A DNA stretch of 64,000 nt from Schmidtea polychroa (lineage: Eukaryota): NCBI GenBank assembly GCA_044892525.1, contig CM097885.1, positions 7,502,001 to 7,566,000 on the forward strand, in the 5' to 3' direction. A program made the translations under genes and the position numbers. Under the pieces are notes generated by a model that ran no database searches, was not told the DNA's origin, and saw nothing but the letters and a program-made list of their open reading frames with translations. Shown here in pieces: positions 1-25,125 of the stretch. How positions within the stretch are numbered: position 1 is the stretch's first letter; the number at the start of each line of letters is the position of its first letter.

Positions 1-3000
1 ATGAAGAAATTGTTGATATTGGAATCGAATCAGTAACCGAGACTGATCTTGATTCTTCGGATTATATTTTCGTTCCAAACTTCATTGTATTCTTTTCCAA
101 ATATCCCTATTTTGATCTTTTTACTGACATCCTTAGCCAATTGTTTCGTTCTATTAATAGCAAAACCACTAGAATAATCGAAGATCAACTAATGGAATAT
201 TCAGCGATCTTGTCCAAGATTCCTATAATGAAGTTCGATAACATACAATTGAATTTCAATATTGATAACTCTATATATTCAATAAAACCCATAAATTCGA
301 CCTTTGACCAGGTCATTGATTGGGATTTTACTTTACTTTTTCACTTACTTTCCATTGATGACATCATTTACATTCTATTGGCATTGTTCCAGGAACAAAA
401 GATCGCATTTCTGTCTCAGTATAATAATATTATTACTCTGGCTTGTGAGACCTTGCTAGTTTTATTTCAACCTTTTACATGGAAGCATTTCTATTTGACA
501 GTGGTTCCGTCTCATTTGTATGAGCTAGCAGATGCGATTTTTCCTTATATTATTGGACTACCTCTCGAACTGAAAAGTCAACTAATATCTTCATACGATG
601 AAATAATCGTGGTGAACTTAGATGAAGGTACAGTTTATAAACCCAAAGCCTATAAGCTGGCAAATATAAAAAGTGATTTGACCGACCAATTAAAAAAATG
701 TTTCCTTGAACGTGATTGGTTGACATTCCGGACGGATATTTCCCATATTAAAACTAACTCAATTGAAGTTTTAAAAGAAATTAATTACCGTAAAATCCAA
801 ACTTTCTCCCACAAGGTCATGCTTAACTTCATGATACTGATGGTGGATTTATTCCAGGAAATTCTCAACAACATCGTTGTGGAAAAACACAATAATATCG
901 TTAATGCCAACGCTGACAAATTTCTGAAATCAAATCAAAGTAAAAATATAGAATTTTTTAATTCAATTTATCACAGTGATAATTTCAATTGTTTTCTCGA
1001 CAGCAAACTACGTACGTCGAAACCGGATGGTTGGGTTAAAATTTGCAATCAATTGTATCCGAACTTCCTCGACGCGTATCGGACTCAGAATTTGAAGTCA
1101 GGAAAGTGGAAACGAATGAGTCTCGATAAAGAAATCAAAGAGATGTTCCAACCGACAGAGAAGGGATGTTTGATCTTTAACTTACCAACAAATAAAACTG
1201 AAAGAGTCAGCTATTTTAAAGCGGTAATTACAAGGATAAACAGTTCCAAAGTAAATGTAAGTTCCTTGAAACTCAAAGCCGAAATATATTTTCAAATGGG
1301 AGACATCCTCAAGGCCTTCGAAACGATTTATCAAGTTCTGGAAATCGACAAAACGGCTTTGGAGTACTCTAAACTAAAAAAGATTATATATGGATTAGAC
1401 AAAACGATAAAGAAGACTCTGGATAAAACTTACTTCATGACCTCTTTAAATGAAATGGTTAATTTGAATCAAAACCTCGAAGTACAACCCAAGAAGCATT
1501 CAGTTCAACAGTTTTATGCTCCAAGTACTCCAATTTCAAAGAATCAATTTTTTGAGATATGTCGCAACGCTAACATTACAGATTTCGAAAGCACATCTGA
1601 AGACCTGTTTCGAGTGTTAACAATAGAACAAAAATCGTCAATACGCCACCCAAAAAGGGTGAGTCCGGAAATATTTCAAATTTTCTACAACACTTGGGTG
1701 CAAAATTCTACAGATTTCCCTGAAGGTGAAATATATATCGATCAATTTCTAGACGAAGTTCTAATATTTCATACTCCTAATTCTATAAAGGTTGATGATT
1801 ATGGACAAGGTCGACTTCTTTTGACTCAAATGAGATTGCTGTTTATTCCTTCTGAAAAGTCATATTTTGAAATTTTAGCAAACTTTACTGAGGAAACACT
1901 TGTTAAAATGAAAATCGACCGAAGAATTAAGGGTTTTGGAAAGACCGTCGATATTTTAGAAGTAACTACCGAAACCAACTTTAAAAACTCTTCAAAGATA
2001 ACTTCGAAAAAACTTGTTCTAAGATTAGTTCAAGATATTGAAATTTGGTTTAATTTGATTTCCGAGATAGGTTATGCAAATAAAGTTTCTTATGAAGAAA
2101 AAGATAAAGTAATTCAAGACAAACTTATAGAGCAGTGTTTGATATACGAAAACCTAGAAATGTGTGCAAAGGAGACCCCATTCTTTAAAAGAAACAGGTA
2201 CAATATGACAAAGATTATGTTGGTATTTACGATGAACCATACAGAAGAAGTTAAACGTACCCAGCCGATTAACAACAACCATAGAAAATACATCATCAAC
2301 CGACTGATGCCATCTCCTAAACAAACCATCACAATCGACTGTGCCTTGGTCATACCAAAACCAATTTTGAAAAATTTTGACTTGTGGTGTGCTATGAGTG
2401 TCGACCAGACTTCTTTCCTAAAATGTTATCACATCATTAATGAAAGTATTCAAAGCTTCATTCCGAAAGAACTGAATTTACAATCGCGAATTAAGGTTAT
2501 GATGTATTTAACTGGCACCAATAAAATCATTTTTGGATTCTGTGACGGAACGATTTCTTTTTTCAATATGAATGATTTTTCCTTTGAAAATTTCAACTTT
2601 TCTTTCAATGCAGGATATCATCCTACCTGTGGCATTATACATTATGAAAGTATTCGTTCTTACGCCATTTATATGGGAATAAGCAACGGGGATTTGATAA
2701 AGTGTCATCCGAACACCAAAACGGTGAATATTAATATTATTATTATTATTATTGTTATTAATATTATTATTATTATTATAATTATTATTATTATTATTAA
2801 TATTATTATAATTATAAATATNNNNNNNNNNNNNNNNNNNNNNNNNNNNNNNNNNNNNNNNNNNNNNNNNNNNNNNNNNNNNNNNNNNNNNNNNNNNNNN
2901 NNNNNNNNNNNNNNNNNNNNNNNNNNNNNNNNNNNNNNNNNNNNNNNNNNNNNNNNNNATTGAATAAAATTATTCTATTAAAAAAATTAATTCATTTGAT

Positions 3001-6000
3001 TTATCATTTCCAAATTGAATCTGCTATAAGCTTGACATAGTTAAGATAATTAAATTTCAAATAAAGTAGATAAGAGTTAAAGAGCATGATTAATTATATC
3101 CGGATGTGTTTAATTAATTTTTGTATTTTTGGTTACATGTCACAAATCTGGATGTGTGCATGTATCAAGCACTGTTCATAATTTTTGATCTATAACATAT
3201 TCAATTTAGAAAAGGTGTACGATATAATTAGCAAATATGTCTAAAATAATATATCTATACCAGGGGTGGCAAAACTTTCAAGTCTTGCGGGCGACTTTTA
3301 ACTAAATTAAATCTGGCGGTCTACCAGAAAAACTATTTTCAATTGTTACCTGTAGTTATTCTATTTATTCTATTTAAATACAAAACGAATTAGAAAAAAA
3401 CTTATAATACTTTACTAGAACGTAAACATATCTTAATATAATATTATTTACTGCTACTACTTGCACCTGATACGTGGCACTGCATCTTATCAGCAAGTTC
3501 TTCGTATTTCGGGCAATAGGAGCTTATGGCGATCCGCAAGCATGATTCCAAATGATCATCTGTCAAACAAGATCGATGTTTTGTTTTAATGACATTCATT
3601 GAAGAAAAGGCTGATTCACAAAGATAGGTGGATCCAAAAAATGCGGACATATATCCAACTACTCTCCGCAAAATTGGATATTTTTCTTCTGAAATAAGAT
3701 TCCAAAAATTATCTTCGGTTGTAGCTCTTGATTTTAAGTAAATGTCGCTTTTCAACGCTATTATCTCATCTTCTAAGCAAGCTGAATCTGAATCCAGAAA
3801 TTCATTAATCTGAGTAGCGATCTCCTCTGTATCAAGAACATCATTAAACGGGAATGACATGAACATAGCAATATTTGCAATTTTAGATAAATCTGCGAAA
3901 CGTGTGTTAAATTCATTTAAAAGGGTAGTAATTTGATTTGTATATTTATCGTAAAGAATTCCTGGCGCATTTTTGGATTCTTCTTCCATGTTTTTAAAAT
4001 GTTTCAAATCACCCCGTTCTAGTTGACGCACAAACAAGGACAGTTTCTCTTTAAACGTCTTTACTGCCGTTATCATGTCAAGAATTGATTTGTGTCTCCC
4101 CTGAAGCTGTAAATTTAATTTATTCAGGTGCTCTGTAATGTCGCAAAGAAAAGCAAGATTTATCAGCCAACTTTTATCCTCCAGTTCGGGATATAATTCT
4201 TCTCTTCCAGTCAAAAACTGTTTTATTCCGGGCAAAAGATCTCTAAATCGTTTTAAAAATGCTGCACGGCTAAGCCATCTTACATCCGTGTGTAACAATA
4301 ATTCAGTATTTTCAATTTCACATTGTTCAAGCAAAGTTCGAAATCGACGTCGTTGTAGACTTCTTGCACGTATCGAATTTACTATTTTAAACGCAATATT
4401 CATTACATAGTTAGAGTTCAACACTTTGGAGCATAAGGTTTGCTGGTGGATAATGCAATGATACGAATGAAATCTGGGAATTTCTTCATCATTTTTGCAA
4501 AGTGTTACAAATCCGACATGTTTTCCGATCATAGACGGAGCTCCATCCGTGGTAATTGATACCAACTTGTGAATCGGGAAATGGGTGCGACTTATAAAAG
4601 ACTTGAATAAATTGTAAATATCTTGACCCCTTGTTTGTCCTTTCATTGGAAGAATAGTCAATAATTCTTCTCTGGTTGACATATCATCAAAAACCATTCG
4701 AATGAAGATGCATAGTTGCGCAGTATCAGTGAAATCTGTAGATTCATCAAATTGCAAAGAGAAAAAGCGGCATTTTCGAATATCTTGCCGCAAAATATCT
4801 TCCAAGTTTTTGCTAATGTCTATCATTCTTTGCGTGCTAGTATTGCGCGTCAATGACATATTGTTGATACAATCCATTATTTCGGATTTATTTTTAAAAT
4901 CTTTGAATAACACCTCACCAGCTTCAACAAACGCCTGTTTCCATATTTCGCCATCTCCAAAAGGTTTTTTATGTTTCATCAAAATATTAACTACCTTGAA
5001 TGATGCTAGGGTAGCTGTTTTTGATTTTGAGTTAAATTTCGTAAAAAAAGTTTGTTGTGCACCTAATTGAGACTTTAACTGCTTGACTTTGTCTTTTCGT
5101 ACCTCGGAATGTAATGGAAAGTCAATTTCATACTGTTTGTGCACTGTTCGAAAATGTCGTTCAACGTTAGCTCTTTTAGGTAGTGCTACGTTTGAATTAC
5201 AAATGAGACAAACACACTTATCTTTCATCATTATGAAAAAATATTCCTGTTCCCATTCAGTATTATAATGGTACGTTTTAGTTTTTTTGGCCGGTTGTGT
5301 CATTGGGGCTAAAACAAGAAAATAATAAAACCTAAAATAAATTAAATATGAAAATTAATGTTAAACACACTTACATACTCAAAAATTAAAAATGTTAACT
5401 TTTATAAAGAATTTTTTTTAATAAAAAAATTTTGAAATTAATATTATAAGCAGGTATTATTCAATACTGAATACTTCAAGCTTTCAAATTTTTCTAACGA
5501 AAACAATTTGATTTCAAAATTGAAATAGACAAACACATGTTTGTTGTATTTTATTTTGGTTGTTTTTTATTTTTTTATTCCTTATCGAAGATTGTAGCGT
5601 CAATGTTTTGCTTTTATTTTATGGCCTACTTGTTCAAACACATGAAATTTATTCTGATTATTAGCTAACTGTATATATTTGAATTTCAAACTAAATATTT
5701 ACTACACTCTGAGTGTTATCTGACTAATATTATGTTTCTTATTGGAATTTTTTTGTCATATGAATCGAAACTTATTTTAAATATGTTTATAAAGTTAGAA
5801 ATTCAATAAATAAAAAACTGATTTTTATATGCAATTTTCCATAGTGCTAGCGGGCTACTTTCGATAGCTACGCGGTCGACCAGTCGACCGCGGTCGACGC
5901 TTTTGCCAGCCCTGATCTATACATATACATATATACATATGCGCGTATTGCACCTGTATGATTATGCTAATTGAGATAAATAATAGGCAATGACATAATC

Positions 6001-7612
6001 TGAGAATTCAGTTATTCAACAATAATCAATAAGATGTACACGAATTCATTCATAATAACTATATGAGTTACGTAATATGCTACTAGTCACAAGAAAATCA
6101 AATATTCTGTTAAAGTTTAAATCTTTTATTAGTATTATTTTTTGAAAAATATATAAATTATTATACAGTAGTATCAGCAGTATAATTTACTGCATAATTC
6201 AGAACTTAATCAGAATATCATCAGAACACTGTATAATTCAAAGAGCGTGCGGTGTACAAAAATGTAACTTTTGGGGAAATCTTATTGCTGTTCTAGAGTA
6301 CTTACCAATAATGAAGAATACTGTATGCTTTCGAAGTCAAACAAAAAGTAAACATCTAATAAATGTGTATAACCAGCGACAAATACAGAATTTCTTTGAT
6401 GGAGGGAAAATATTAACAATCTAACAAATAATGATTAAAGAATGACAACAGGTGTCATTATTGATACAGCTCATACACAAATAATCTTTCACATAACACA
6501 ATATTATTTAATCATTCAATGTCTTATAGAACAAAACTAATGCGACGAGAGTATTTCTTAAGCATATCAAAACGATCTATCATTACATTAGTATCTCCTT
6601 GCATATCCTGCTGAATGCATAAAAATGCCGAACCTGTTAATCTCTCATCTTTCATTCGATTTTAAAGATATATTTTCAGCCAATAGAATTTGAGATTTAA
6701 TGTTCGACGTTCTATTCATTCTCTCTTCTGATATTCCATTCATTATCTAAAACCAATATAAGTGACTCTCATCGCCCATAGTAATTTAAATTTGTTTATC
6801 ACGTTTCTGCATGTGATTGTTTAAGACCTATATATAAGGGACATCGTTATTTACAAAAATAAATTTACGAAGCCGTTTAGATGTGATACATGTTCTCATC
6901 CCTGCGCCTCTATCCATTCATGTTATTGAGTTATTATTGTATTCAGCAATATATTTGAATTAATTAATAAATGTTTATAGATAGAAGAAGTCCTTAAAAT
7001 TCCTGAAAGTCAAATAATAAACTTTATTGAAATTTACGACTCTGAAACCTTTCTTATCGGCTCTTCCCATAGCGTATTTATTATTACTCTAAAAGGAGAG
7101 GTTCTCTCTGAAATTGTTTATGTAAATAATCATACAATCGCAAATCTAATAAGTGCTTTCATCTTGTTGGACGGAAATAAACGGCTAATAATTGGACTTC
7201 ACCGAATGCCCGTTTTCTTGGAGTATGATATCCGAGATAAAATGAATCCAATTTGTTTGAGGAAGAAAAATCTTTTCAACAATAAGAACTTTGACAGTTC
7301 AGAAGTTAATGGTAAAGCTAATTTTCATTGCAAACTAATGACGTTTCCATAGATCATTCGGAATCAACCTACAATTATATCGGGATATCTTCTATTGTAC
7401 AAATTCCAAGGAGCAATCAGTTCTGGTTTATTTATAAAGATGGAACTGTTGAAATAAGGAACTTTCAATCCCTTGAAAAGCTGGAAACGTTTATCTCTCA
7501 CACCGGATCCTTAATACTTTCCATGGTCTGTGAATTGCATAGCAAAAGAATTGTCCTGACTGTCGGAAGGGATGATGGGAAAATTAATTTATGGAATATT
7601 AATCCAGTTTAA
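1..7612 (+). CDS. DENND3: DENND3-like Rab GEF, left copy, 5'-truncated by the window; exons <1-2723, 6981-7311, 7353-7612
   Basis: ORF 141-2963 has a DENN core (LLALFQEQKIAF, FQPFTWKHFY, PYIIG), a PH/GRAM-like block (GQGRLLLTQMRLLFI) and WD40-like sequence. Phase-0 donor ACG|GTGAAT at 2723/2724 joins acceptor TTTATAG|ATA at 6980/6981. A 41-bp GT-AG intron at 7312-7352 contains CTAAT. The last exon ends GKINLWNINPV* (WD40). The symbol comes from recalled domain order and motifs. Confidence 0.8.
2731..2958. repeat. (ATT)n microsatellite at the start of DENND3 intron 1, followed by an assembly gap (N 2822-2958)
   Basis: Directly visible. The complete array is seen in the other arm at about 19661-19848. 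Confidence 0.95.
3261..5914 (-). mobile_element. Full-length 2654-bp hAT transposon, Buster/SPIN (GTF2IRD2-like) type
   Basis: TIRs CAGGGGTGGCAAAA (3261) and TTTTGCCAGCCCTG (ends 5914), 13/14 match. Perfect 8-bp TSD ATCTATAC (3253-3260 and 5915-5922) with the nnnTAnnn pattern typical of Buster elements. Confidence 0.95.
3444..5303 (-). CDS. Intact 619-aa hAT transposase
   Basis: ATG-to-stop ORF with N-terminal CLIC...HFRTVH zinc-finger motif, FSLQFDESTD (D1), ITTDGAPSM (D2), CIIH, DVRWLSR and STYLCESAFS (E). Confidence 0.92.
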   Translation of the reverse strand: MTQPAKKTKTYHYNTEWEQEYFFIMMKDKCVCLICNSNVALPKRANVERHFRTVHKQYEIDFPLHSEVRKDKVKQLKSQLGAQQTFFTKFNSKSKTATLASFKVVNILMKHKKPFGDGEIWKQAFVEAGEVLFKDFKNKSEIMDCINNMSLTRNTSTQRMIDISKNLEDILRQDIRKCRFFSLQFDESTDFTDTAQLCIFIRMVFDDMSTREELLTILPMKGQTRGQDIYNLFKSFISRTHFPIHKLVSITTDGAPSMIGKHVGFVTLCKNDEEIPRFHSYHCIIHQQTLCSKVLNSNYVMNIAFKIVNSIRARSLQRRRFRTLLEQCEIENTELLLHTDVRWLSRAAFLKRFRDLLPGIKQFLTGREELYPELEDKSWLINLAFLCDITEHLNKLNLQLQGRHKSILDMITAVKTFKEKLSLFVRQLERGDLKHFKNMEEESKNAPGILYDKYTNQITTLLNEFNTRFADLSKIANIAMFMSFPFNDVLDTEEIATQINEFLDSDSACLEDEIIALKSDIYLKSRATTEDNFWNLISEEKYPILRRVVGYMSAFFGSTYLCESAFSSMNVIKTKHRSCLTDDHLESCLRIAISSYCPKYEELADKMQCHVSGASSSSK

Positions 7613-8814
7613 CTTGGTAGATTCCAATATAAATAATTTTAAAGCTTTAAAAAGAATTTTTAATAAATTTCTTTAGTTTTTTATTAATTTTTATTTTCTT
7701 AGACATACTCAACACATTTCGGTTTTTGTTTAAATATGTTAATTTCATTTACTTTTTTTAACAACTAATTTATTTGATTAATTATTTGAATTATTCTAAA
7801 TCTCTTTTGAGATTTTATTACATATTTAATGTTCTTTATATTATCATTTTATTGTGGTCTGCCTCATTGGAAGTAATGAAGACAATACAATTTCTATAGT
7901 AAAATATTTACTATAAAGATAAAATATTGATGAATAAATGCAATGTCAATTGAAAAGAAATCAGTGGTGAAAATTGAAAATAAGTTCTTAGAATAAATAT
8001 AAGAAAATAAATATGAAATTTATACAGATGAAATTATTCTGAATTTTTTGATGTCGAAATAGCTTTATTTTTTGTTTTTTAAAAAATAATGGTTCATTTG
8101 AAGTTAATATTTTTTACACCCTATATGTTCTACACCGTAATGTATAATTACAGTACTTTTAGCCATAAATTAAGGTATAATATAAGACATAATTAATTTA
8201 TAAATAGAAAAGATTCACAAACCTACTTGAAATAAAGAAAAAGTTACGTGAATTTACTTTAGAAAAGCTGAAAAATGATTATGGTGAGAAAATAAAATAC
8301 TAACATACATACAATGCACACAACAACCCTATCATCAAATTAGATACTGACGGACATATAATACGTTTAGCAATCATTTATTACGAGATTTATAAAAATT
8401 CTAAAAATATGCAACTTGAATTTTCTAGCTTTATATCACACCTCTCCCTTCATCCCCCATCACCCCTCTTATGACTACAAGGTTTTGTAATAGCTTTATC
8501 AAGGCTAGAAGGTTTCCTTTATTGCTTGAGTGAGCTATATGGTTCTTTTATTGCTGCAGAGAGCTAATGTTTTTTTTCAATAGCTACATTGGGGTTAAGG
8601 AATTTTTTCCACTTCGAATTCCTTTCTAATCTTTTCAAATAAATTCTAATTTCAGATAAAATTCTTTAAATTATTACTTTTTTATTTTAATGATTTATGA
8701 AAAATATTTATTTTTATATTTTGATCTATTTTTAATTTGAATTTTCCGTTAAAAATGTTATTGAACTTTCTATAGAAATTTTCCTTTTTTTTATCAAATT
8801 TTAATTCAATTCAG

Positions 8815-9799
8815 ATGTCCATTCAATAGAATTGGATGCGAAATGAATGAAGTAGAGAAGGACGAAATTAAAGTCCATCTCAATGAGAACCATGAAGGCC
8901 ATAGCAAATTACTGATTGATCAGTTCAGTAATTTATGCAATGAAATGCAGGCAATGAGAGATGAGAATATGAAATTGCGTAACGAAATTATCAATATCAA
9001 TGTAAAATTTTATTTGTAATTAATTTTATTGATATTTATTGAAATAGAAGAATTAAATGAGGAAATAGTGGCAGTGAAGAATGAGAATCGCTCATTTAGA
9101 ATGGAGATGGAGACAAATATTGATCAATCAATCAAGTTTGATTATTGATTTGATTTGTTATTGATTTGTTATTGATGCAAAGAAGATCAGGCAACAAATT
9201 GAGGTGATTGAATCAAAATGTCCAAAGCAAATTGATGAGATGAAAGAGAAATGCGAGAAGCATCGGCAACGGAAAATGAAAATGTGATTTATTGATTTTT
9301 TGAAATGTTTAAATTTGAGATTCAGTTGCAGCTTGAAATGCCGAAATGCGCCAATGAAATTCCGTCGATTGAAACAAAATTAGAAAATGAAAAATATATA
9401 ATTTACGGATATTTTGAATGGAAAATCAATAAATTTTCACAACAAGAGAAATATAAATATTGACAGCGAGGCATTTTATTCCGAGCCGATTGGTTCCAAA
9501 ACGTGCTTCGCAGTGTTGATTGGGAGTGATTGGGTTCTGGCTGGTTTCTGTTTGATGCGTGGGGCAAATGATGAGCAATTGGATTGGCTGTTCAAACAAT
9601 CGATGTGAACGATCCAACAAATGGTAACATTTATAACAGTGAGTCAATGAAATATTCAGATTGGCCTGATCATCCCGGATGGATGAAACCGTCAAATGAC
9701 AGAAATGATCCAATTGACATGTATATTGATAACTCAATCTATAAATTAACAACCAAAAATGATAAATTGCTGTTCAGGTGCAGAATTGAAAAATTATGA
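8815..9799 (+). pseudogene. TRAF-like gene remnant (TRAF zinc-finger end, coiled coil, MATH domain), frameshifted
   Basis: An exon from 8815 reads CPFNRIGC...HLNENHEGH followed by heptad-rich sequence. MATH motifs GYFEWKINKFS, SEAFYSEP...LMRGANDEQLDWLF and DKLLFRCRIEKL* fall in three different frames. The 9002-9047 intron is phase-incompatible. No upstream exons are visible. Confidence 0.7.
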
Positions 9800-10941
9800 C
9801 AAATTTAAAAAAATTTGCAAATGTGCAGCAGATGAGGAAACAAGAACCGACGGCGTTGTGTAACAAGAAACAGTGCTAATAGGAAACCGCAGTGAGTATC
9901 AACAACTGTCTGGTTGGTTTAATGCTCCTCTATGACGTCATTATTCATTATTCATTTACTGGTGGGCCTATGAGATTTCATCAATCTTGCTTACGAGAGC
10001 AACTGAGACTAACATGGGGATAATGCTGTACTGATTGAGAGATATATGACTGAGTTCCTATCGCATCATTCGTTGCAAGCTCGCAATCCATTCCACACTG
10101 TGCTACAATGTTTTTATCAATTGCTGCAGAGGGCTACAGGGTTATTATTAAGTGCTGCATATCTGATGCTTTGTCTATGACTTTAAAAGCAATCAATCAT
10201 TTGCTTGGATATAACAAATGGTAGAATATTTTCATTTAAATGCAATTATGTAGAAAATTTGTTTAATCAATATTATCAGTAGAGGCGTTATATCAGTCTC
10301 CTTTGGAATTATTTAGATATTTCTATCATAGATTGACGATCTTTATAAACTGTAAATGAATCTATACTGAATTTTCTGAATAATTAGAGCAATCAGTCAA
10401 TCAAATTGAATATACACGTGATAAGTTTACTTATAAGTAATTTTTAAAATTAATTTATTTCAATTAATTTATTCAATTTAAATAAATTATTTACTTGATT
10501 TTATTAGAAAATTCTTTGAGGATTCATGTTTAAATTAATTAATAACTTGAATGATCAGTGTTTACGATAAATATTTACTGGATTATTAATGACTAGAATT
10601 TATAGTTTTTTTGTTATCCATTAACTAGATTTTTATGATATTTATTTAATTAAAATAGTTAAAATATTTACTTGTTATTTTTATATTAATTTCTAGTATT
10701 CTAATTCGAGAATGTATAGGTTTTACCTAATTAGGAGAAAATCCTACAAGTATTGATGCCTTGAGTTCAGTCAATCAGTTGCACATCTATTAATTTTTTA
10801 TCCATTGAGTATCAACTTCAATGAAGAAGATTTTCTTTTAAAGATCAGTCAATTTGTATTCAAAAACTTACAACATAATTCTTAACAGTAGATAAATTAC
10901 GTGTATTTAATATCAGTACCCAGATATTAGCATCAATTCAG

Positions 10942-11752
10942 CAGTGGCATAGGTAGAAATTTTCGGCCCCTATGCAATGAGTCATAGATTGCCCCCCCCT
11001 ATACTGCATACACAAGTGAAATAGGTGCGGAGCACCATAGCGCCGCAGGAAAAAAACGTTTTGGCCCCTTTTGGAAGCACAATTGAATTAGACCAGGATT
11101 TCCCAAATTTTTCCTGTGACGTGACACTTCGTTACTCTCGAAATTTTGATGGAACATCTTGTTTATTTTGTACAGTTTGAGACCAGTGGTGTAGACATAC
11201 CCAAGATTTTTTTAAGGGGAGGGAAGAATGTTAATTGAAAGAAGGGCTTATAGTTACAGAAGAGTTTTGCACTGCAGGCAAAACATTTTTTTGGGTCCTC
11301 TTTGGAAAGACGATTTAATTAAATAATTAGAGCTCAATATACAATATAACATTTTAAATCGTTATAAAATGATAATAATGTATCAGGGACAAATGTGTAT
11401 AGCCGACAAGCGAAACAATTTTTTCGACCCCTATTTGAATGTGTATTTACTTAGATAACTAAAGTTGCTTGCTTAGGCAATATATTATTAGCGAGTGAGA
11501 GGCAGAGGGGATTGCATAAATATGTAAAATGCAGGTTAATAATGTACTTAATGCAATAAGTAAACAAAACAGTGGAGCTTTATTACATAAAACCCCAAAT
11601 TGATCATTTAAAGGTCCCTGTTGACTGATGCCGACCGTGCCGTTGTTTGACATTGTTTTCTGAAGAAAATTAAGGAAACTTGGAAAAAAGGCCCCCTGTC
11701 TTGTGGCCCCCTATGCATTGCTTACTCTTGCTATATGGTAGCTACGCCACTG
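10942..11752. mobile_element. Non-autonomous hAT element (811 bp)
   Basis: Termini CAGTGGCATAGG and GCTACGCCACTG. Perfect 8-bp TSD CAATTCAG (10934-10941 and 11753-11760). Confidence 0.88.
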
Positions 11753-12120
11753 CAATTCAGTAAAGATTTTGATCATGTTAATAATCTGTATTATGACCGA
11801 CACAATTCAGCTATCTATATAATATTTTGACAGCTGTCGAGATATAAACTTTTTTGATAATCCCATCTTTCGGATTTACCATGTCCTTTCTTTTCCTTAT
11901 CTTGAAAAATTCACCGAGATGACAAGATAATTTAAATTTGGTTTTGCTTTTTGTTTTGCTACTTTTGCGCTTGTACTTGTTAATTAAACATGACCTTCTC
12001 TTATTTATTTGTCTTTTTTTATTGATTTTCTTTTGTTCCCTTCTCATTTTACAACATCTGTTTTTCACTCCAATTTCACTGAATTCCAGAATAATCCCCA
12101 TTCATTTATCATCATTTATC

Positions 12121-12210
12121 ATCAGAATATTCTCGGTCAGAATGTTCTACAGCAGAATGTTCTACATCAGAATGCTCATCCTCAAAGTGATCTTGATCAG
12201 AATGTTTTTG
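12121..12210 (+). repeat. Six-unit 15-bp minisatellite (ATCAGAATGTTCTAC-like)
   Basis: Units start at 12121, 12136, 12151, 12166, 12181 and 12196. Confidence 0.9.
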
Positions 12211-12245
12211 AACAAATCAAAACCAATTAAATTAAAAATCACGGT

Positions 12246-12347
12246 TTTATTTACACAAACTATCATTTTCTTGACTCCAAGTGTATAAGCTAATAGAACA
12301 TACTCTCGAGTTTGACCATTTTTTGAAATAACAGATTCAAATTCTCC
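12246..12347 (-). pseudogene. EEF1A: 34-codon fragment of elongation factor 1-alpha
   Basis: [34 protein letters not shown] matches the highly conserved EF1A segment [34 protein letters not shown]. Flanks are unrelated to EF1A. Confidence 0.9.
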
Positions 12348-12473
12348 AATAATCATTAAATCCTATAGTTTTCGATAAAGGGCTTTTTTTGAAACATCAT
12401 CAATGTGGTTTCTACACCCACCATCGACATACTCGGCCAAACAACTATCAGATCTTAATTTATCTAGGTGTGA

Positions 12474-12877
12474 TATCTCCCTTATTATTCTTTCATTTTT
12501 TATTAATTCAATATCACACACTTTTCCCATTTGCAGTTCATTTAATGACCAGTTTTCATTTAATTTTCTCATAAGCATTTTCCAATGCCGTTCTTTGATT
12601 GCTTCAAATTTCAATTCCACAATTGGCGCATTGACTTTCATGTACAACTTTAGAGGTATGCGAACAAGTTCAAATGATCCGTGTTGTTTGAAACTGTTCG
12701 AAAAATTCTTCCAATTTCTATGTTAAATCCAAAACTTACCTTTTGAACATTATCACGCTCTTCTTTTAGTCGAGTGAATTTCCCTTCAGCGATTTGAATA
12801 TTATTAACTGCTGTTGGTTTGTATTCCCAATTAGTCAACACTTCTGTTGTCTTCGATTCCATAATTCTATCTTCTAA
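12474..12877 (-). pseudogene. DYNC1H1: Two fragments of cytoplasmic dynein heavy chain (12740-12877 and 12474-12710)
   Basis: EDRIMESKTTEVLTNWE...EGKFTRLKEERD and YMKVNAPIVELKFEAIKERHWKMLMRKL..NW match recalled DYNC1H1 stem segments ([54 protein letters not shown]). The intervening protein sequence is missing, and GTAAGT follows the first block. Confidence 0.82.
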
Positions 12878-13049
12878 AAGGCTTATGCTCTGACCAGCCT
12901 GACAAGCCTCATCTTGCTTTTCCCATGTATTCATTTTTCGTTTGATATTTTGTGTGTTCGCAATGAAATGAATTGATTCGTTAGTTCCTCCAGAATTGAT
13001 TAATGGCTGTTCCAATTCGTTTTGAGTTCTTAGCTCTTCATTTAAGGAC

Positions 13050-13400
13050 TTATTTCTGTCGAGTTGCGTTTCCTCAATTTCTTGAAGTTCGCATAACTCG
13101 TCATTTAACTTTTCCGTTTCCGAAAAATAACTCAGATTTCTGTTAATCTTACCCAGACATGTCCATCCGAGGGGCGTCAACCTCACAACTGGTACGTACT
13201 TTTCTTCTTTTACTTCTCGAATAGATTGATGTAGATATGGGTAGTCAGCGCCAATCAATACGTCTACCTACGGTTTTTTATTCAAAATTGGGAAGCCTAT
13301 ATATCTCAAATGCTTCCAGTGATCTGTTTCAATTAATAAATCTTCTTTAGTCTCTACTATTTCAGAAAATACATTTTTAGGTGCAATTTCTTCAGGTTTA
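13050..13400 (-). mobile_element. BEL/Pao LTR retrotransposon fragment (protease C-terminal region)
   Basis: HWKHLRYIGFP...*VDVLIGADY...PVVRLTPLGWTCLG follows the BEL/Pao W.HL...LLIG.D...P.A..T.LGW..G pattern. Confidence 0.7.
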
Positions 13401-13636
13401 CTGGGCTAATTGCTGCGATTCTTCACATTTTACAATTAAATACCGTAAATAAGCTTCATATTTCATCATATAATCATTATATTTTGCAAGAAATTCCTTT
13501 ATAACTAATTCCATTAAACAATTTTAGAAGTAACTTTCAGATAAATGTCCAACGTTCCAAACATTTTATTTAAAAACAATTTGGAGAAATATCTTTATTT
13601 TTTCAAAATACGTGCGAAAAAACTGAAAAAACTCTG

Positions 13637-13726
13637 ATCAGAATGTTCTACATCAGAATGCTCTTAATCAGAATGCTCATTATCAAAATGTTCTACATCA
13701 GAATGCTCTTGATTTGAATGCTTATT
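13637..13726 (+). repeat. Second six-unit 15-bp minisatellite, same family and orientation as 12121-12210
   Basis: Units ATCAGAATGTTCTAC, ATCAGAATGCTCTTA, ATCAGAATGCTCATT, ATCAAAATGTTCTAC, ATCAGAATGCTCTTG, ATTTGAATGCTTATT. Confidence 0.9.
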
Positions 13727-15408
13727 ATTATGTTATTTATTGATACTAAATATTGTAGAGTGATGTTGGATTATAAAGTTGTGTTATGGAAATTATCGTA
13801 GAGCCCAGCCGAGTCACCTTTAAAAATACTGTCTCGGAACAGCTGGGGTGCTTGTATGTTATTAAGATATTATGGTTATTGATTATTCATTAATGAACTA
13901 TTGTGATCTCGTTATCAATTGCGATTGTAACTATTAATAATTTGTTGTGTAGGGAAAATTTGTAGAGCTCGACATCATCTCCAGTAAAAAAATGTGGCGG
14001 GACAGTCGGGATGCTTGTATGTATGTAAAAGAAGATACAAAACCACAAATAATAATTACTACAATTTTATTAACACAAAAATATAAATACTTCGTGATAC
14101 TTCAGGAGACCTTCTGTTATAGTGACTAGTTATTTCAACCTTCAAATTAAACCGGATTTGATAAAGAATTGTATTACGTGAACCACTCAAAACAAGCTTG
14201 TGGATATTAAATAGGATTTCAATATATCAATTTCCTTGGAAAATTTGGAATAAATTGAATATTTCAATGAACGTATTAGTCGTTCTTTGATTTGTAGAAT
14301 GTTAGACTACAAATGCAGTTTCTTTCTCTTTCAATAATATTTTGGATCTTCTTTCAAACTATTAACTTTCTAAATTTTTTTCTATTGATTTTTTTTATTG
14401 TTTTTTTCAATTTGTTATTTGTCATTCAATTTGTTATTTGTTATCTATATTGTTTTTAAAATTTCTTTTCCTCGGCACTACGGGAGCGATAATATTCAAT
14501 AAAAAACAAAACTTATTTGAAGTATTGTTGAAAACAAAAATAACGATAAAAATACAACAATCTACTACATATGTAATATGTAAAAATAATATAATAAACA
14601 AGCAACAATAAACATTTTACAACTTTTATTATAAAATATAAAAATAAAATTACGCACTTTGTTCTTGAATTTTATTTTGTAGAATTCTGGGATCATTTTT
14701 GGGGTTTATTATGTGTGTTAGTATTTTATTTTCTCACCATAATTATTTTTCAGCTTTTCTAAAGTAAATTCACGTAACTTTTTCTTTATTTCAAGTAGGG
14801 TTTGTGAATCTTTTCTATTTATAAATTAATTATGTCTTATATTATACCTTAATTTATGGCTAAAAGTACTGTAATTATACATTACGGTGTAGAACATATA
14901 GGGTGTAAAAAATATTAACTTCAAATGAACCATTATTTTCAAAAAACAAAAAATAAAGCTATTTCGACATCAAAAAATTCAGAATAATTTCATCTGTATA
15001 AATTTCATATTTATTTTCTTATATTTATTCTAAGAACTTATTTTCAATTTTCACCACTGATTTCTTTTCAATTGACATTGCATTTATTCATCAATATTTT
15101 ATCTTTATAGTAAATATTTTACTATAGAAATTGTATTGTCTTCATTACTTCCAATGAGGCAGACCACAATAAAATGATAATATTAAGAACATTAAATATG
15201 TAATAAAATCTCAAAAGAGATTTAGAATAATTCAAATAATTAATCAAATAAATTAGTTGTTAAAAAAAGTAAATGAAATTAACATATTTAAACAAAAACC
15301 GAAATGTGTTGAGTATGTCTAAGAAAATAAAAATTAATAAAAAACTAAAGAAATTTATTAAAAATTCTTTTTAAAGCTTTAAAATTATTTATATTGGAAT
15401 CTACCAAG

Positions 15409-18400
15409 TTAAACTGGATTAATATTCCATAAATTAATTTTCCCATCATCCCTTCCGACAGTCAGGACAATTCTTTTGCTATGCAATTCACAGACCATGG
15501 AAAGTATTAAGGATCCGGTGTGAGAGATAAACGTTTCCAGCTTTTCAAGGGATTGAAAGTTCCTTATTTCAACAGTTCCATCTTTATAAATAAACCAGAA
15601 CTGATTGCTCCTTGGAATTTGTACAATAGAAGATATCCCGATATAATTGTAGGTTGATTCCGAATGATCTATGGAAACGTCATTAGTTTGCAATGAAAAT
15701 TAGCTTTACCATTAACTTCTGAACTGTCAAAGTTCTTATTGTTGAAAAGATTTTTCTTCCTCAAACAAATTGGATTCATTTTATCTCGGATGTCATACTC
15801 CAAGAAAACGGGCATTCGGTGAAGTCCAATTATTAGCCGTTTATTTCCGTCCAACAAGATGAAAGCACTTATTAGATTTGCGATTGTATGATTATTTACA
15901 TAAACAATTTCAGAGAGAACCTCTCCTTTTAGAGTAATAATAAATACGCTATGGGAAGAGCCGATAAGAAAGGTTTCAGAGTCGTAAATTTCAATAAAGT
16001 TTATTATTTGACTTTCAGGAATTTTAAGGACTTCTTCTATCTATAAACATTTATTAATTAATTCAAATATATTGCTGAATACAATAATAACTCAATAACA
16101 TGAATGGATAGAGGCGCAGGGATGAGAACATGTATCACATCTAAACGGCTTCGTAAATTTATTTTTGTAAATAACGATGTCCCTTATATATAGGTCTTAA
16201 ACAATCACATGCAGAAACGTGATAAACAAATTTAAATTACTATGGGCGATGAGAGTCACTTATATTGGTTTTAGATTATGAATGGAATATCAGAAGAGAG
16301 AATGAATAGAACGTCGAACATTAAATCTCAAATTCTATTGGCTGAAAATATATCTTTAAAATCGAATGAAAGATGAGAGATTAACAGGTTCGGCATTTTT
16401 ATGCATTCAGCAGGATATGCAAGGAGATACTAATGTAATGATAGATCGTTTTGATATGCTTAAGAAATACTCTCGTCGCATTAGTTTTGTTCTATAAGAC
16501 ATTGAATGATTAAATAATATTGTGTTATGTGAAAGATTATTTGTGTATGAGCTGTATCAATAATGACACCTGTTGTCATTCTTTAATCATTATTTGTTAG
16601 ATTGTTAATATTTTCCCTCCATCAAAGAAATTCTGTATTTGTCGCTGGTTATACACATTTATTAGATGTTTACTTTTTGTTTGACTTCGAAAGCATACAG
16701 TATTCTTCATTATTGGTAAGTACTCTAGAACAGCAATAAGATTTCCCCAAAAGTTACATTTTTGTACACCGCACGCTCTTTGAATTATACAGTGTTCTGA
16801 TGATATTCTGATTAAGTTCTGAATTATGCAGTAAATTATACTGCTGATACTACTGTATAATAATTTATATATTTTTCAAAAAATAATACTAATAAAAGAT
16901 TTAAACTTTAACAGAATATTTGATTTTCTTGTGACTAGTAGCATATTACGTAACTCATATAGTTATTATGAATGAATTCGTGTACATCTTATTGATTATT
17001 GTTGAATAACTGAATTCTCAGATTATGTCATTGCCTATTATTTATCTCAATTAGCATAATCATACAGGTGCAATACGCGCATATGTATATATGTATATGT
17101 ATAGATCAGGGCTGGCAAAAGCGTCGACCGCGGTCGACTGGTCGACCGCGTAGCTATCGAAAGTAGCCCGCTAGCACTATGGAAAATTGCATATAAAAAT
17201 CAGTTTTTTATTTATTGAATTTCTAACTTTATAAACATATTTAAAATAAGTTTCGATTCATATGACAAAAAAATTCCAATAAGAAACATAATATTAGTCA
17301 GATAACACTCAGAGTGTAGTAAATTTTTAGTTTGAAATTCAAATATATACAGTTAGCTAATAATCAGAATAAATTTCATGTGTTTGAACAAGTAGGCCAT
17401 AAAATAAAAGCAAAACATTGACGCTACAATCTTCGATAAGGAATAAAAAAATAAAAAACAACCAAAATAAAATACAACAAACATGTGTTTACATTCCGAG
17501 GTACGAAAAGACAAAGTCAAGCAGTTAAAGTCTCAATTAGGTGCACAACAAACTTTTTTTACGAAATTTAACTCAAAATCAAAAACAGCTACCCTAGCAT
17601 CATTCAAGGTAGTTAATATTTTGATGAAACATAAAAAACCTTTTGGAGATGGCGAAATATGGAAACAGGCGTTTGTTGAAGCTGGTGAGGTGTTATTCAA
17701 AGATTTTAAAAATAAATCCGAAATAATGGATTGTATCAACAATATGTCATTGACGCGCAATACTAGCACGCAAAGAATGATAGACATTAGCAAAAACTTG
17801 GAAGATATTTTGCGGCAAGATATTCGAAAATGCCGCTTTTTCTCTTTGCAATTTGATGAATCTACAGATTTCACTGATACTGCGCAACTATGCATCTTCA
17901 TTCGAATGGTTTTTGATGATATGTCAACCAGAGAAGAATTATTGACTATTCTTCCAATGAAAGGACAAACAAGGGGTCAAGATATTTACAATTTATTCAA
18001 GTCTTTTATAAGTCGCACCCATTTCCCGATTCACAAGTTGGTATCAATTACCACGGATGGAGCTCCGTCTATGATCGGAAAACATGTCGGATTTGTAACA
18101 CTTTGCAAAAATGATGAAGAAATTCCCGTTTTCATTCGTATCATTGCATTATCCACCAGCAAACCTTATGCTCCAAAGTGTTGAACTCTAACTATGTAAT
18201 GAATATTGCGTTTAAAATAGTAAATTCGATACGTGCAAGAAGTCTACAACGACGTCGATTTCGAACTTTGCTTGAACAATGTGAAATTGAAAATACTGAA
18301 TTATTGTTACACACGGATGTAAGATGGCTTAGCCGTGCAGCATTTTTAAAACGATTTAGAGATCTTTTGCCCGGAATAAAACAGTTTTTGACTGGAAGAG

Positions 18401-19660
18401 AAGAATTATATCCCGAACTGGAGGATAAAAGTTGGCTGATAAATCTTGCTTTTCTTTGCGACATTACAGAGCACCTGAATAAATTAAATTTACAGCTTCA
18501 GGGGAGACACAAATCAATTCTTGACATGATAACGGCAGTAAAGACGTTTAAAGAGAAACTGTCCTTGTTTGTGCGTCAACTAGAACGGGGTGATTTGAAA
18601 CATTTTAAAAACATGGAAGAAGAATCCAAAAATGCGCCAGGAATTCTTTACGATAAATATACAAATCAAATTACTACCCTTTTAAATGAATTTAACACAC
18701 GTTTCGCAGATTTATCTAAAATTGCAAATATTGCTATGTTCATGTCATTCCCGTTTAATGATGTTCTTGATACAGAGGAGATCGCTACTCAGATTAATGA
18801 ATTTCTGGATTCAGATTCAGCTTGCTTAGAAGATGAGATAATAGCGTTGAAAAGCGACATTTACTTAAAATCAAGAGCTACAACCGAAGATAATTTTTGG
18901 AATCTTATTTCAGAAGAAAAATATCCAATTTTGCGGAGAGTAGTTGGATATATGTCCGCATTTTTTGGATCCACCTATCTTTGTGAATCAGCCTTTTCTT
19001 CAATGAATGTCATTAAAACAAAACATCGATCTTGTTTGACAGATGATCATTTGGAATCATGCTTGCGGATCGCCATAAGCTCCTATTGCCCGAAATACGA
19101 AGAACTTGCTGATAAGATGCAGTGCCACGTATCAGGTGCAAGTAGTAGCAGTAAATAATATTATATTAAGATATGTTTACGTTCTAGTAAAGTATTATAA
19201 GTTTTTTTCTAATTCGTTTTGTATTTAAATAGAATAAATAGAATAACTACAGGTAACAATTGAAAATAGTTTTTCTGGTAGACCGCCAGATTTAATTTAG
19301 TTAAAAGTCGCCCGCAAGACTTGAAAGTTTTGCCACCCCTGGTATAGATATATTATTTTAGACATATTTGCTAATTATATCGTACACCTTTTCTAAATTG
19401 AATATGTTATAGATCAAAAATTATGAACAGTGCTTGATACATGCACACATCCAGATTTGTGACATGTAACCAAAAATACAAAAATTAATTAAACACATCC
19501 GGATATAATTAATCATGCTCTTTAACTCTTATCTACTTTATTTGAAATTTAATTATCTTAACTATGTCAAGCTTATAGCAGATTCAATTTGGAAATGATA
19601 AATCAAATGAATTAATTTTTTTAATAGAATAATTTTATTCAATTGCTTTTAAGAATTTTG

Positions 19661-19732
<72 letters not shown>

Positions 19733-22700
19733 TGAATAATAATATTAATAATATTTATAATTATAATAATATTAATAATAATAATAATAATAATTATAAT
19801 AATAATAATAATATTAATAACAATAATAATAATAATAATATTAATATTCACCGTTTTGGTGTTCGGATGACACTTTATCAAATCCCCGTTGCTTATTCCC
19901 ATATATATGGCGTAAGAACGAATACTTTCATAATGTATAATGCCACAGGTAGGATGATATCCTGCATTGAAAGAAAAGTTGAAATTTTCAAAGGAAAAAT
20001 CATTCATATTGAAAAAAGAAATCGTTCCGTCACAGAATCCAAAAATGATTTTATTGGTGCCAGTTAAATACATCATAACCTTAATTCGCGATTGTAAATT
20101 CAGTTCTTTCGGAATGAAGCTTTGAATACTTTCATTAATGATGTGATAACATTTTAGGAAAGAAGTCTGGTCGACACTCATAGCACACCACAAGTCAAAA
20201 TTTTTCAAAATTGGTTTTGGTATGACCAAGGCACAGTCGATTGTGATGGTTTGTTTAGGAGATGGCATCAGTCGGTTGATGATGTATTTTCTATGGTTGT
20301 TGTTAATCGGCTGGGTACGTTTAACTTCTTCTGTATGGTTCATCGTAAATACCAACATAATCTTTGTCATATTGTACCTGTTTCTTTTAAAGAATGGGGT
20401 CTCCTTTGCACACATTTCTAGGTTTTCGTATATCAAACACTGCTCTATAAGTTTGTCTTGAATTACTTTATCTTTTTCTTCATAAGAAACTTTATTTGCA
20501 TAACCGATCTCGGAAATCAAATTAAACCAAATTTCAATATCTTGAACTAATCTTAGAACAAGTTTTTTCGAAGTTATCTTTGAAGAGTTTTTAAAGTTGG
20601 TTTCGGTAGTTACTTCTAAAATATCGACGGTCTTTCCAAAACCCTTAATTCTTCGGTCGATTTTCATTTTAACAAGTGTTTCCTCAGTAAAGTTTGCTAA
20701 AATTTCAAAATATGACTTTTCAGAAGGAATAAACAGCAATCTCATTTGAGTCAAAAGAAGTCGACCTTGTCCATAATCATCAACCTTTATAGAATTAGGA
20801 GTATGAAATATTAGAACTTCGTCTAGAAATTGATCGATATATATTTCACCTTCAGGGAAATCTGTAGAATTTTGCACCCAAGTGTTGTAGAAAATTTGAA
20901 ATATTTCCGGACTCACCCTTTTTGGGTGGCGTATTGACGATTTTTGTTCTATTGTTAACACTCGAAACAGGTCTTCAGATGTGCTTTCGAAATCTGTAAT
21001 GTTAGCGTTGCGACATATCTCAAAAAATTGATTCTTTGAAATTGGAGTACTTGGAGCATAAAACTGTTGAACTGAATGCTTCTTGGGTTGTACTTCGAGG
21101 TTTTGATTCAAATTAACCATTTCATTTAAAGAGGTCATGAAGTAAGTTTTATCCAGAGTCTTCTTTATCGTTTTGTCTAATCCATATATAATCTTTTTTA
21201 GTTTAGAGTACTCCAAAGCCGTTTTGTCGATTTCCAGAACTTGATAAATCGTTTCGAAGGCCTTGAGGATGTCTCCCATTTGAAAATATATTTCGGCTTT
21301 GAGTTTCAAGGAACTTACATTTACTTTGGAACTGTTTATCCTTGTAATTACCGCTTTAAAATAGCTGACTCTTTCAGTTTTATTTGTTGGTAAGTTAAAG
21401 ATCAAACATCCCTTCTCTGTCGGTTGGAACATCTCTTTGATTTCTTTATCGAGACTCATTCGTTTCCACTTTCCTGACTTCAAATTCTGAGTCCGATACG
21501 CGTCGAGGAAGTTCGGATACAATTGATTGCAAATTTTAACCCAACCATCCGGTTTCGACGTACGTAGTTTGCTGTCGAGAAAACAATTGAAATTATCACT
21601 GTGATAAATTGAATTAAAAAATTCTATATTTTTACTTTGATTTGATTTCAGAAATTTGTCAGCGTTGGCATTAACGATATTATTGTGTTTTTCCACAACG
21701 ATGTTGTTGAGAATTTCCTGGAATAAATCCACCATCAGTATCATGAAGTTAAGCATGACCTTGTGGGAGAAAGTTTGGATTTTACGGTAATTAATTTCTT
21801 TTAAAACTTCAATTGAGTTAGTTTTAATATGGGAAATATCCGTTCGGAATGTCAACCAATCACGTTCAAGGAAACATTTTTTTAATTGGTCGGTCAAATC
21901 ACTTTTTATATTTGCCAGCTTATAGGCTTTGGGTTTATAAACTGTACCTTCATCTAAGTTCACCACGATTATTTCATCGTATGAAGATATTAGTTGACTT
22001 TTCAGTTCGAGAGGTAGTCCAATAATATAAGGAAAAATCGCATCTGCTAGCTCATACAAATGAGACGGAACCACTGTCAAATAGAAATGCTTCCATGTAA
22101 AAGGTTGAAATAAAACTAGCAAGGTCTCACAAGCCAGAGTAATAATATTATTATACTGAGACAGAAATGCGATCTTTTGTTCCTGGAACAATGCCAATAG
22201 AATGTAAATGATGTCATCAATGGAAAGTAAGTGAAAAAGTAAAGTAAAATCCCAATCAATGACCTGGTCAAAGGTCGAATTTATGGGTTTTATTGAATAT
22301 ATAGAGTTATCAATATTGAAATTCAATTGTATGTTATCGAACTTCATTATAGGAATCTTGGACAAGATCGCTGAATATTCCATTAGTTGATCTTCGATTA
22401 TTCTAGTGGTTTTGCTATTAATAGAACGAAACAATTGGCTAAGGATGTCAGTAAAAAGATCAAAATAGGGATATTTGGAAAAGAATACAATGAAGTTTGG
22501 AACGAAAATATAATCCGAAGAATCAAGATCAGTCTCGGTTACTGATTCGATTCCAATATCAACAATTTCTTCATTGTCAACAGACGGGATGGTTTTCATT
22601 TGGAAGTGTCGATAGAACTCCAATCTAAAAGCATAAGACCGATTGCCCAGATTATCTGTCATTGGGAAATATTCAATTCTCGGTTCATTATAACTCTTAT

Positions 22701-23217
22701 AAACTTTTAAATTGTTGTTGAAATAAGTTCCTGGAAAGGACTTAATCGTTTCGTTGGAGATCGAACCAAACGAGCCTTTGTAGTTGTCGATTGTTATGTG
22801 TTTACAGCTCTTTCTGCGACTTTGAAGTCTTGAAGTCCGACGATTCATGCTGACAGCAAGATTTAGATCGAAATTGTTATCCCGGGTGCTTGGTTTGTTA
22901 TACTGAGCTACTAGATCACAAATAAATTCCAAATTATCTTTGTTTGTTTGTCTGGCATTGGGGGATTTTGTATCATCAGCGGGTTTAAACAGGTTTATTG
23001 GTTTAAATTCCTCTGGGGGATAATTAGGTAAATCTTTGGAGAACGGAAACACAGCCACGTTTGCGGATAATACTGCTAAAATGTTATGCTGATATGAGGC
23101 AGTGCCGGATGGATCGGTATTTACAAATGTATTCCTGGTTGGTTTGAGGCCCGTCAATTCATTTGCACCTATCATCAAGGTACATTCAATTAGCCCATCA
23201 TTGTAAGTATCATTCAT
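15409..23217 (-). CDS. DENND3: DENND3-like Rab GEF, complete right copy, about 1318 aa; exons 23217-19852, 16040-15710, 15668-15409
   Basis: ATG at 23217 (MNDTYNDGLIECTLMIGA, uDENN-like start). Exon 1 is 3366 bp (1122 codons) and exons 2+3 are 591 bp including the stop, so the frame closes correctly. Splice sites are the same as in the left copy, and the translation matches the left copy over the overlap. Confidence 0.82.
17107..19341 (+). mobile_element. Defective copy of the Buster-type hAT (2235 bp)
   Basis: Same TIRs and the same TSD (GTATAGAT on this strand). A 418-bp deletion corresponding to left-arm 5113-5530 removes the ATG and about 63 codons. A net -1 frameshift near 18128 (CCCGTTTTC versus CCCAGATTTC) splits the ORF. 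418+1 equals the 419-bp length difference. Confidence 0.93.
19661..19848. repeat. (AAT)n compound microsatellite in DENND3 intron 1
   Basis: Directly visible. Confidence 0.95.
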
Positions 23218-23570
23218 TTTTTATCAATTAAATTTGTTTAAACGTTCATAAATTTTATATGAAAAATGGCAGGTTCAATGATGGGCCAAGGTCAAATTGT
23301 ACTTGAAATGGATTACTAAGTTTCATGTTAAACTATGCAATACTTCCTATCTATTACTAAAACAACAACAATGATAATAATAATATTATTAAACAATTAA
23401 ATGATAATATAAGCATTTTACTGCTTAATATATATTCAATAAAATGAATGAATTTCTATAATTGAAAGTTTTTTCATCTTATTAAATTTGTACTTCGCAG
23501 CAAAAGACTTAAATTATCATTTAATTGTTTAACATTTAATTAATGTTAATAACAAGGAATCATCACTTTA

Positions 23571-23571
23571 T

Positions 23572-23652
<81 letters not shown>
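23571..23652. repeat. (AAT)n microsatellite upstream of DENND3
   Basis: Directly visible. Confidence 0.95.
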
Positions 23653-23682
23653 TATAAGATAAGGCCAATCAAACATTCTTTT

Positions 23683-24994: not shown

Positions 24995-25125
24995 NNNNNN
25001 NNNNNNNNNNNNNNNNNNNNNNNNNNNNNNNNNNNNNNNNNNNNNNNNNNNNNNNNNNNNNNNNNNNNNNNNNNNNNNNNNNNNNNNNNNNNNNNNNNNN
25101 NNNNNNNNNNNNNNNNNNNNNNNNN
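24995..25125. other. Assembly gap (other gaps: 2822-2958, 41167-41338, 53924-54060, 60609-60775)
   Basis: Runs of N. Confidence 1.

Follow-up and report, generated by a model that had tools for sequence, protein, structure and literature searches.

Large palindromes of the mammalian X and Y chromosomes are defined for working purposes as inverted arms longer than 8 kb and more than 99% identical, and the cases listed have arms of 8 to 140 kb around spacers that range from 77 bp to 358 kb (PMC8327919). We describe an assembled structure that resembles them in a window of 64,000 bases from Schmidtea polychroa (positions 7,502,001 to 7,566,000 of contig CM097885.1, assembly GCA_044892525.1; G+C 28.8%, five runs of N), in which two copies of a DENND3-like gene lie in near-identical inverted arms around a spacer of 6.4 kb. 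Our reading, to which we would give about an even chance, is that this is a real and recent inverted segmental duplication, i.e., a small palindrome, of a DENND3-like gene whose first intron contains a hAT transposon. Like the mammalian palindromes, the structure has inverted arms, a unique spacer, a protein-coding gene in each arm and an arm divergence below 0.2%, and it satisfies the definition given above in both length and identity, although the visible arm of 8.3 kb stands at the bottom of the mammalian size range. It differs in that the mammalian palindromes are old, maintained by gene conversion, conserved between species and known from clone-based finished sequence, whereas the present one is known from one assembled sequence in a gapped draft assembly of an invertebrate.

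Two other kinds of described structures are relevant for comparison. The first are human germline fold-back inverted duplications, whose spacers range from 766 to 70,466 bp (median 3,428 bp) and whose junctions carry short inverted homologies, in the form of inverted microhomology of 2-8 bp or of paired repeats (PMC3907307). The order of elements is the same here, namely a segment, a single-copy spacer of a few kb that is within the described range, and the segment again in inverted orientation. In contrast, the human cases are megabase-scale and lie beside terminal deletions or translocations, while no adjacent terminal deletion, telomere healing or translocation is seen here and arm B is followed outward by 41 kb of ordinary unique sequence that includes exons of transporters and remains of transposons. 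The second are duplications created by assembly. False heterotype duplications are mostly separated by assembly gaps and are defined by read depth (about half per copy) together with heterozygous k-mers (PMC9516828), and the palindromes of a rotifer draft assembly have been ascribed to phased haplotypes that were scaffolded wrongly (PMC8494291). The present locus shares with these the near-identical duplicated genes, the gapped draft assembly and differences that look heterozygous, but the 6.4 kb between its two copies are unique and free of gaps. In either case the feature is of a known kind, an inverted segmental duplication or a known type of assembly error.

The arms, spacer and other features are listed in Table 1. 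BLASTN self-comparison of the window and global alignment of the arms both identify arm B as the reverse complement of arm A, in agreement with a preliminary description of this sequence, which had claimed near-identical inverted arms with scattered differences. The match consists of three blocks (1-2821/19751-22574, 2959-5114/17489-19643 and 5531-8311/14710-17490) with 99.68-99.91% identity per block, and chance cannot explain an 8-kb arm-to-arm match of such quality. Because arm A reaches position 1 of the window, 8.3 kb is a lower bound on the length of the arms, and the outer ends lie outside the view. Both inner junctions and the entire spacer are gap-free read sequence, as had been stated; no N run falls in 8312-14709, and a single N-free stretch from 2959 to 24994 spans 5.3 kb of arm A together with the spacer and the whole of arm B. 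The spacer also proved unique, as proposed: comparison of the spacer with itself down to word size 9 revealed no inverted self-similarity, a hidden symmetry that would betray two allelic halves was sought and not found, and the only match to the rest of the window is 57 bp long. Beyond the arm ends the sequence is unrelated unique DNA on each side. The preliminary description was thus right about the arms but had omitted a 418-bp indel between them, the hAT gene that fills much of the arm and the incompleteness of gene copy A.

Table 1. Features of the 64,000-base window (coordinates in window positions; strand given where applicable)
Feature	Position	Strand	Remarks
Arm A	1..8311		8311 nt including 137 N; extends past left window edge; from self-comparison and global alignment
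Arm B	14710..22574		7865 nt; end at 22574 reflects no more than the window edge at position 1
Spacer	8312..14709		6398 nt, zero N, single-copy within the window
Inner edge of arm A	8081..8311		partner in arm B 14710-14941; 4/14 difference events in 231 bp
418-bp segment	5113..5530		arm A only; arm B junction 17490/17491 with 2-nt microhomology
N runs	2822-2958, 24995-25125, 41167-41338, 53924-54060, 60609-60775
Assembly gap in arm A	2822..2958		137 N; in intron 1 of copy A, within (TAT)n microsatellite; left unfilled
(TAT)n microsatellite	2729..2815		six bases past exon 1 donor, ends at N run; arm B counterpart 19661-19846
DENND3-like copy A, exon 1	1..2723	+	partial, first 643 coding bases left of window; GT donor at 2724
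DENND3-like copy A, 3' coding part	6981..7609	+	weak WD40-like C-terminal matches; preceded by AG
DENND3-like copy B, exon 1	19849..23217	-	ATG at 23217, beyond mirrored part; DENN domain residues 239-423
DENND3-like copy B, 3' coding part	15412..16040	-	frame change as in copy A
hAT-type (GTF2IRD2/FAM200-like) transposase ORF (open reading frame)	3444..5303	-	intact, 619 amino acids; antisense in intron 1 of copy A
hAT gene in arm B	17483..19158	+	broken
TRAF-like coiled-coil and MATH-domain remnant	8843..9799	+	in spacer, just downstream of copy A
Short gene-fragment run	12162..13258	-	in spacer; DHC_N2, GTPase piece, protease-like piece
Second, degenerate hAT-type remnant	62469-63634	+	32-33% identical to arm hAT

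Global alignment of the arms yields 11 substitutions in about 7.75 kb, four small indels and the 418-bp indel, which corresponds to a divergence of 0.14%. The small indels comprise a 3-bp microsatellite unit at 2780 and single bases at 4475, 8081 and 8221; apart from the 418-bp deletion, the indels are located in microsatellite and homopolymer runs. Four substitutions (731, 2069, 2669 and 7229) fall in exons of the DENND3-like gene and all four are synonymous. Only 20% of the possible single-base changes in these exons are synonymous, so that four of four would be expected with P ~0.002 if there were no selection. Sequencing noise was ruled out on this ground as the source of the differences, which are instead real variants filtered by selection. 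The difference events are concentrated next to the spacer, with the density in the innermost 231 bp given in Table 1 (permutation P = 0.005). This inner-edge segment was also considered as a possible dispersed repeat, and the idea was dropped when no further copy was found within the window.

Several points favour a real structure, and it is from them that we tentatively infer that the palindrome exists in the organism: 1) the two copies are joined without a gap inside one N-free stretch and not at a scaffold join, 2) the arm ends run into unrelated unique DNA and are joined without a common repeat, leaving none that could mediate a head-to-head overlap, 3) the differences cluster at the inner arm edge, an excess that has no obvious allelic explanation, and 4) the differences are real variants, synonymous wherever they are coding. 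In addition, the length of the spacer falls in the fold-back range (PMC3907307), and the described artefacts arose mostly as gap-separated copies (PMC9516828) or from erroneous scaffolding (PMC8494291).

The strongest competing explanation is an assembly artefact, namely that the arms are the two haplotypes of a single DENND3-like locus, both retained by the assembler and joined head to head through the spacer. We regard this as a serious possibility, although somewhat short of an even chance. It requires that the haplotypes differ structurally just downstream of the gene and that a chimeric join occurred within 8312-14709. The spacer halves have no inverted similarity and hence are not allelic to each other; with such an asymmetric, unique spacer, a haplotype origin would need an allelic structural difference exactly at the arm end as well as a head-to-head mis-join in the spacer without homology. 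Several observations nevertheless weigh against a real duplication, and most of them suit the artefact. A divergence of 0.14%, with indels in microsatellites and homopolymers and one 418-bp deletion, is ordinary allelic variation, and in combination with the synonymous-only coding changes it is exactly the pattern that a single constrained gene would show between its alleles. In young redundant copies constraint is usually relaxed, so replacements would be expected. The draft assembly is broken by an N run every 6-22 kb, and arm A not only runs off the window but has a gap of its own, at a microsatellite that the assembly of arm B spans. Look-ups for further copies of the locus, described below, found nothing, and no microhomology could be demonstrated at the junctions, as judged without the ancestral sequence. 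There is also precedent: the rotifer palindromes all vanished in the chromosome-level assembly (PMC8494291), and in older vertebrate assemblies many genes were falsely duplicated (PMC9516828). The preliminary description had offered the alternatives of a real amplicon or mis-joined haplotypes. The structure is a poor fit to a simple mis-join, but the differences between the arms fit alleles, and the two alternatives stand fairly close in probability.

It is quite improbable that the arms are two real paralogues with a different arrangement, brought into a palindromic layout by a mis-join in the spacer, for example in the fragment run at about 12.2-13.3 kb: each arm end does have its own unique continuation, and the right half of the spacer includes a series of short pieces of genes, some resembling transposons by eye, of the sort in which assemblers tend to mis-join, but the spacer contains no N, its two halves have no inverted repeat in common and the window gives no sign of a second locus.

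If the inverted duplication is real, a segment of 8 kb or more would have been copied in reverse beside itself, with 6.4 kb of single-copy DNA left between the copies. The most likely origin would be a replicative fold-back or template switch: a 3' end, broken or stalled on one side of the present spacer, would have annealed to the opposite strand at the inner arm end, and its extension from there would have produced the reversed arm. The switch may have been seeded by a short inverted repeat that already existed and is now seen as the innermost 231 bp, with their higher divergence. Alternatively, these 231 bp may be the zone least reached by later gene conversion, and they could equally reflect error-prone DNA synthesis close to the breakpoint; the clustering of differences there is compatible with conversion and also with other explanations. 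Following the duplication, the copies would have diverged by about 0.14%, and decay of the hAT gene would have been confined to a single arm. The DENND3-like coding sequence, having acquired synonymous changes only, may be under selection in both copies or may be kept alike by arm-to-arm conversion. Inversion of the spacer, which the preliminary description had raised, would likewise be conjectural. We consider it unlikely that the structure is a real palindrome of an invertebrate genome that bears a gene and is maintained by selection; cnidarian proteins are among the gene's nearest named relatives.

Alignment of the encoded protein and the ORFs agree that the two DENND3-like genes are placed tail to tail, as had been claimed: copy A runs rightwards from past the window edge, copy B runs leftwards, and both converge on the spacer. 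The closest relative of the encoded protein, and its sole close relative, is an unnamed database protein of 1332 amino acids (P0001) with 82% identity. P0001 aligns to each arm in three pieces; in arm A the alignment ends at 2723 with residue 1122 and resumes at 6981. The Pfam DENN domain is found with E = 2.6e-27, residues 715-928 of P0001 match the DENND3 middle domain (PDB 6b3y) weakly (E = 0.0012), and the C-terminal WD40-type matches are all under the curated cut-offs. In an exhaustive search, the relatives after P0001 were 23-27% identical over up to ~950 residues. Names were checked for 10 of the 11 best of these matches; seven are clusters named DENND3 or DENND3-like (from Nematostella, Acropora, Lingula, Dreissena, Patella, Crassostrea and lampreys), and the other three are a Rab guanyl-nucleotide exchange factor from Mactra, a hypothetical protein from Solemya and one without a name. 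Judging by the DENN domain and the names of these relatives, the label DENND3-like appears a fair one. Exact look-up of P0001 and of two long ORFs of the window, together with a cluster look-up, returned no other copy of the locus, and a metagenome scan for which the window protein was aligned with P0001 gave 361 pattern matches of which none was confirmed.

DENND3 is a DENN-domain exchange factor for the small GTPase Rab12. The genes in the window are similar to DENND3 in the DENN domain, the weak match to 6b3y, the weak WD40-like C-terminus and the length of ~1330 amino acids, but they are only 23-27% identical to the named DENND3 proteins and both carry a frame change ahead of the last ~90 codons; exchange activity is a prediction from the sequence. 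The frame change relative to P0001 is located at 7322-7337 in copy A and 15684-15699 in copy B, with no space for an intron. The protein as written would stop at ~7350 and lose its last ~90 residues, and the next 94 codons after the frame change are open and 79% identical to P0001. It is either a very recent frameshift common to both copies or a common consensus error.

The N run in arm A lies in the first intron of copy A, beginning ~100 nt beyond the exon 1 donor. Its flanking bases, 2821 and 2959, align to 19751 and 19643 of arm B in the same order and orientation, with 107 nt between them in arm B compared to 137 N in arm A. Since the flanks are collinear with arm B and the run is intronic, the gap conceals no rearrangement and disrupts no reading frame. 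A long ORF that enters the N run was rejected as coding sequence; exon 1 stops at the GT donor, and the remainder of this ORF is poly-Ile encoded by the (TAT)n array. A third ATA/TAT trinucleotide array is found upstream of gene copy B (23570-23657).

The same intron contains the hAT-type transposase gene, which is intact in arm A and broken in arm B, so that one intact and one decayed copy are present 12 kb apart. In arm B the 418-bp deletion removes the start and the zinc finger, and there is a 1-bp frameshift at ~18128. In the intact ORF the N-terminal zinc finger scores above its cut-off (33.4 vs 27.3 bits) and the C-terminal dimerisation region slightly under it (20.9 vs 21.4 bits). Relatives are many, with 45-68% identity, both domains and names of the GTF2IRD2-like or FAM200-like kind; the best of them (65-68% identical) come from scattered animals, the best named one being from a beetle and the other a nameless contig from a public sequencing run. 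Elements of hAT type have terminal inverted repeats and an 8-bp target duplication; no convincing terminal repeats were found around 2959-6990, and the element may be old, domesticated or equipped with very short ends. The degenerate remnant near the right end of the window (Table 1) is a second sequence of hAT type.

The spacer itself contains a TRAF-like remnant and a run of gene fragments. In the TRAF-like remnant downstream of copy A, the MATH part is spread over three overlapping ORFs in two reading frames, and it is therefore probably a pseudogene. In the fragment run, a dynein heavy-chain piece (DHC_N2, E = 4.8e-6) is directly followed by an elongation-factor GTPase piece (E = 0.007), and a stretch resembling a retrotransposon protease, recognized by eye only, stands ahead of both; the run resembles a patchwork of gene pieces acquired by capture or template switching. 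Elsewhere in the window, a DDE_1 (pogo-type) transposase fragment (E = 2.2e-8) adjoins an MFS_1 transporter exon (E = 7.8e-10) at 38742-40020 on the forward strand, and further transporter-like ORFs were recognized by eye at 29248-29520, 43494-43967 and 48047-48337 (reverse strand), which suggests neighbouring transporter genes with transposon-filled introns. A tandem duplication of ~400 bp (29813-30649, 78.5% identity) is unrelated to the palindrome, and Rfam and tRNA scans produced no matches.

If the structure is an artefact, the count of DENND3-like genes is inflated and the locus matters only as a warning, namely that haplotype-derived palindromes may occur inside gap-free stretches and not only at scaffold joins. 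If it is real, it would be a very young inverted gene duplication, sequenced in full and with its two junctions in view, and would provide a clean small case for how inverted duplications form, for arm-to-arm conversion outside sex chromosomes and outside vertebrates, and for a nested transposon decaying in one copy only. Should the palindrome moreover be maintained by selection, it would represent a non-vertebrate analogue of the palindromes of mammalian sex chromosomes.

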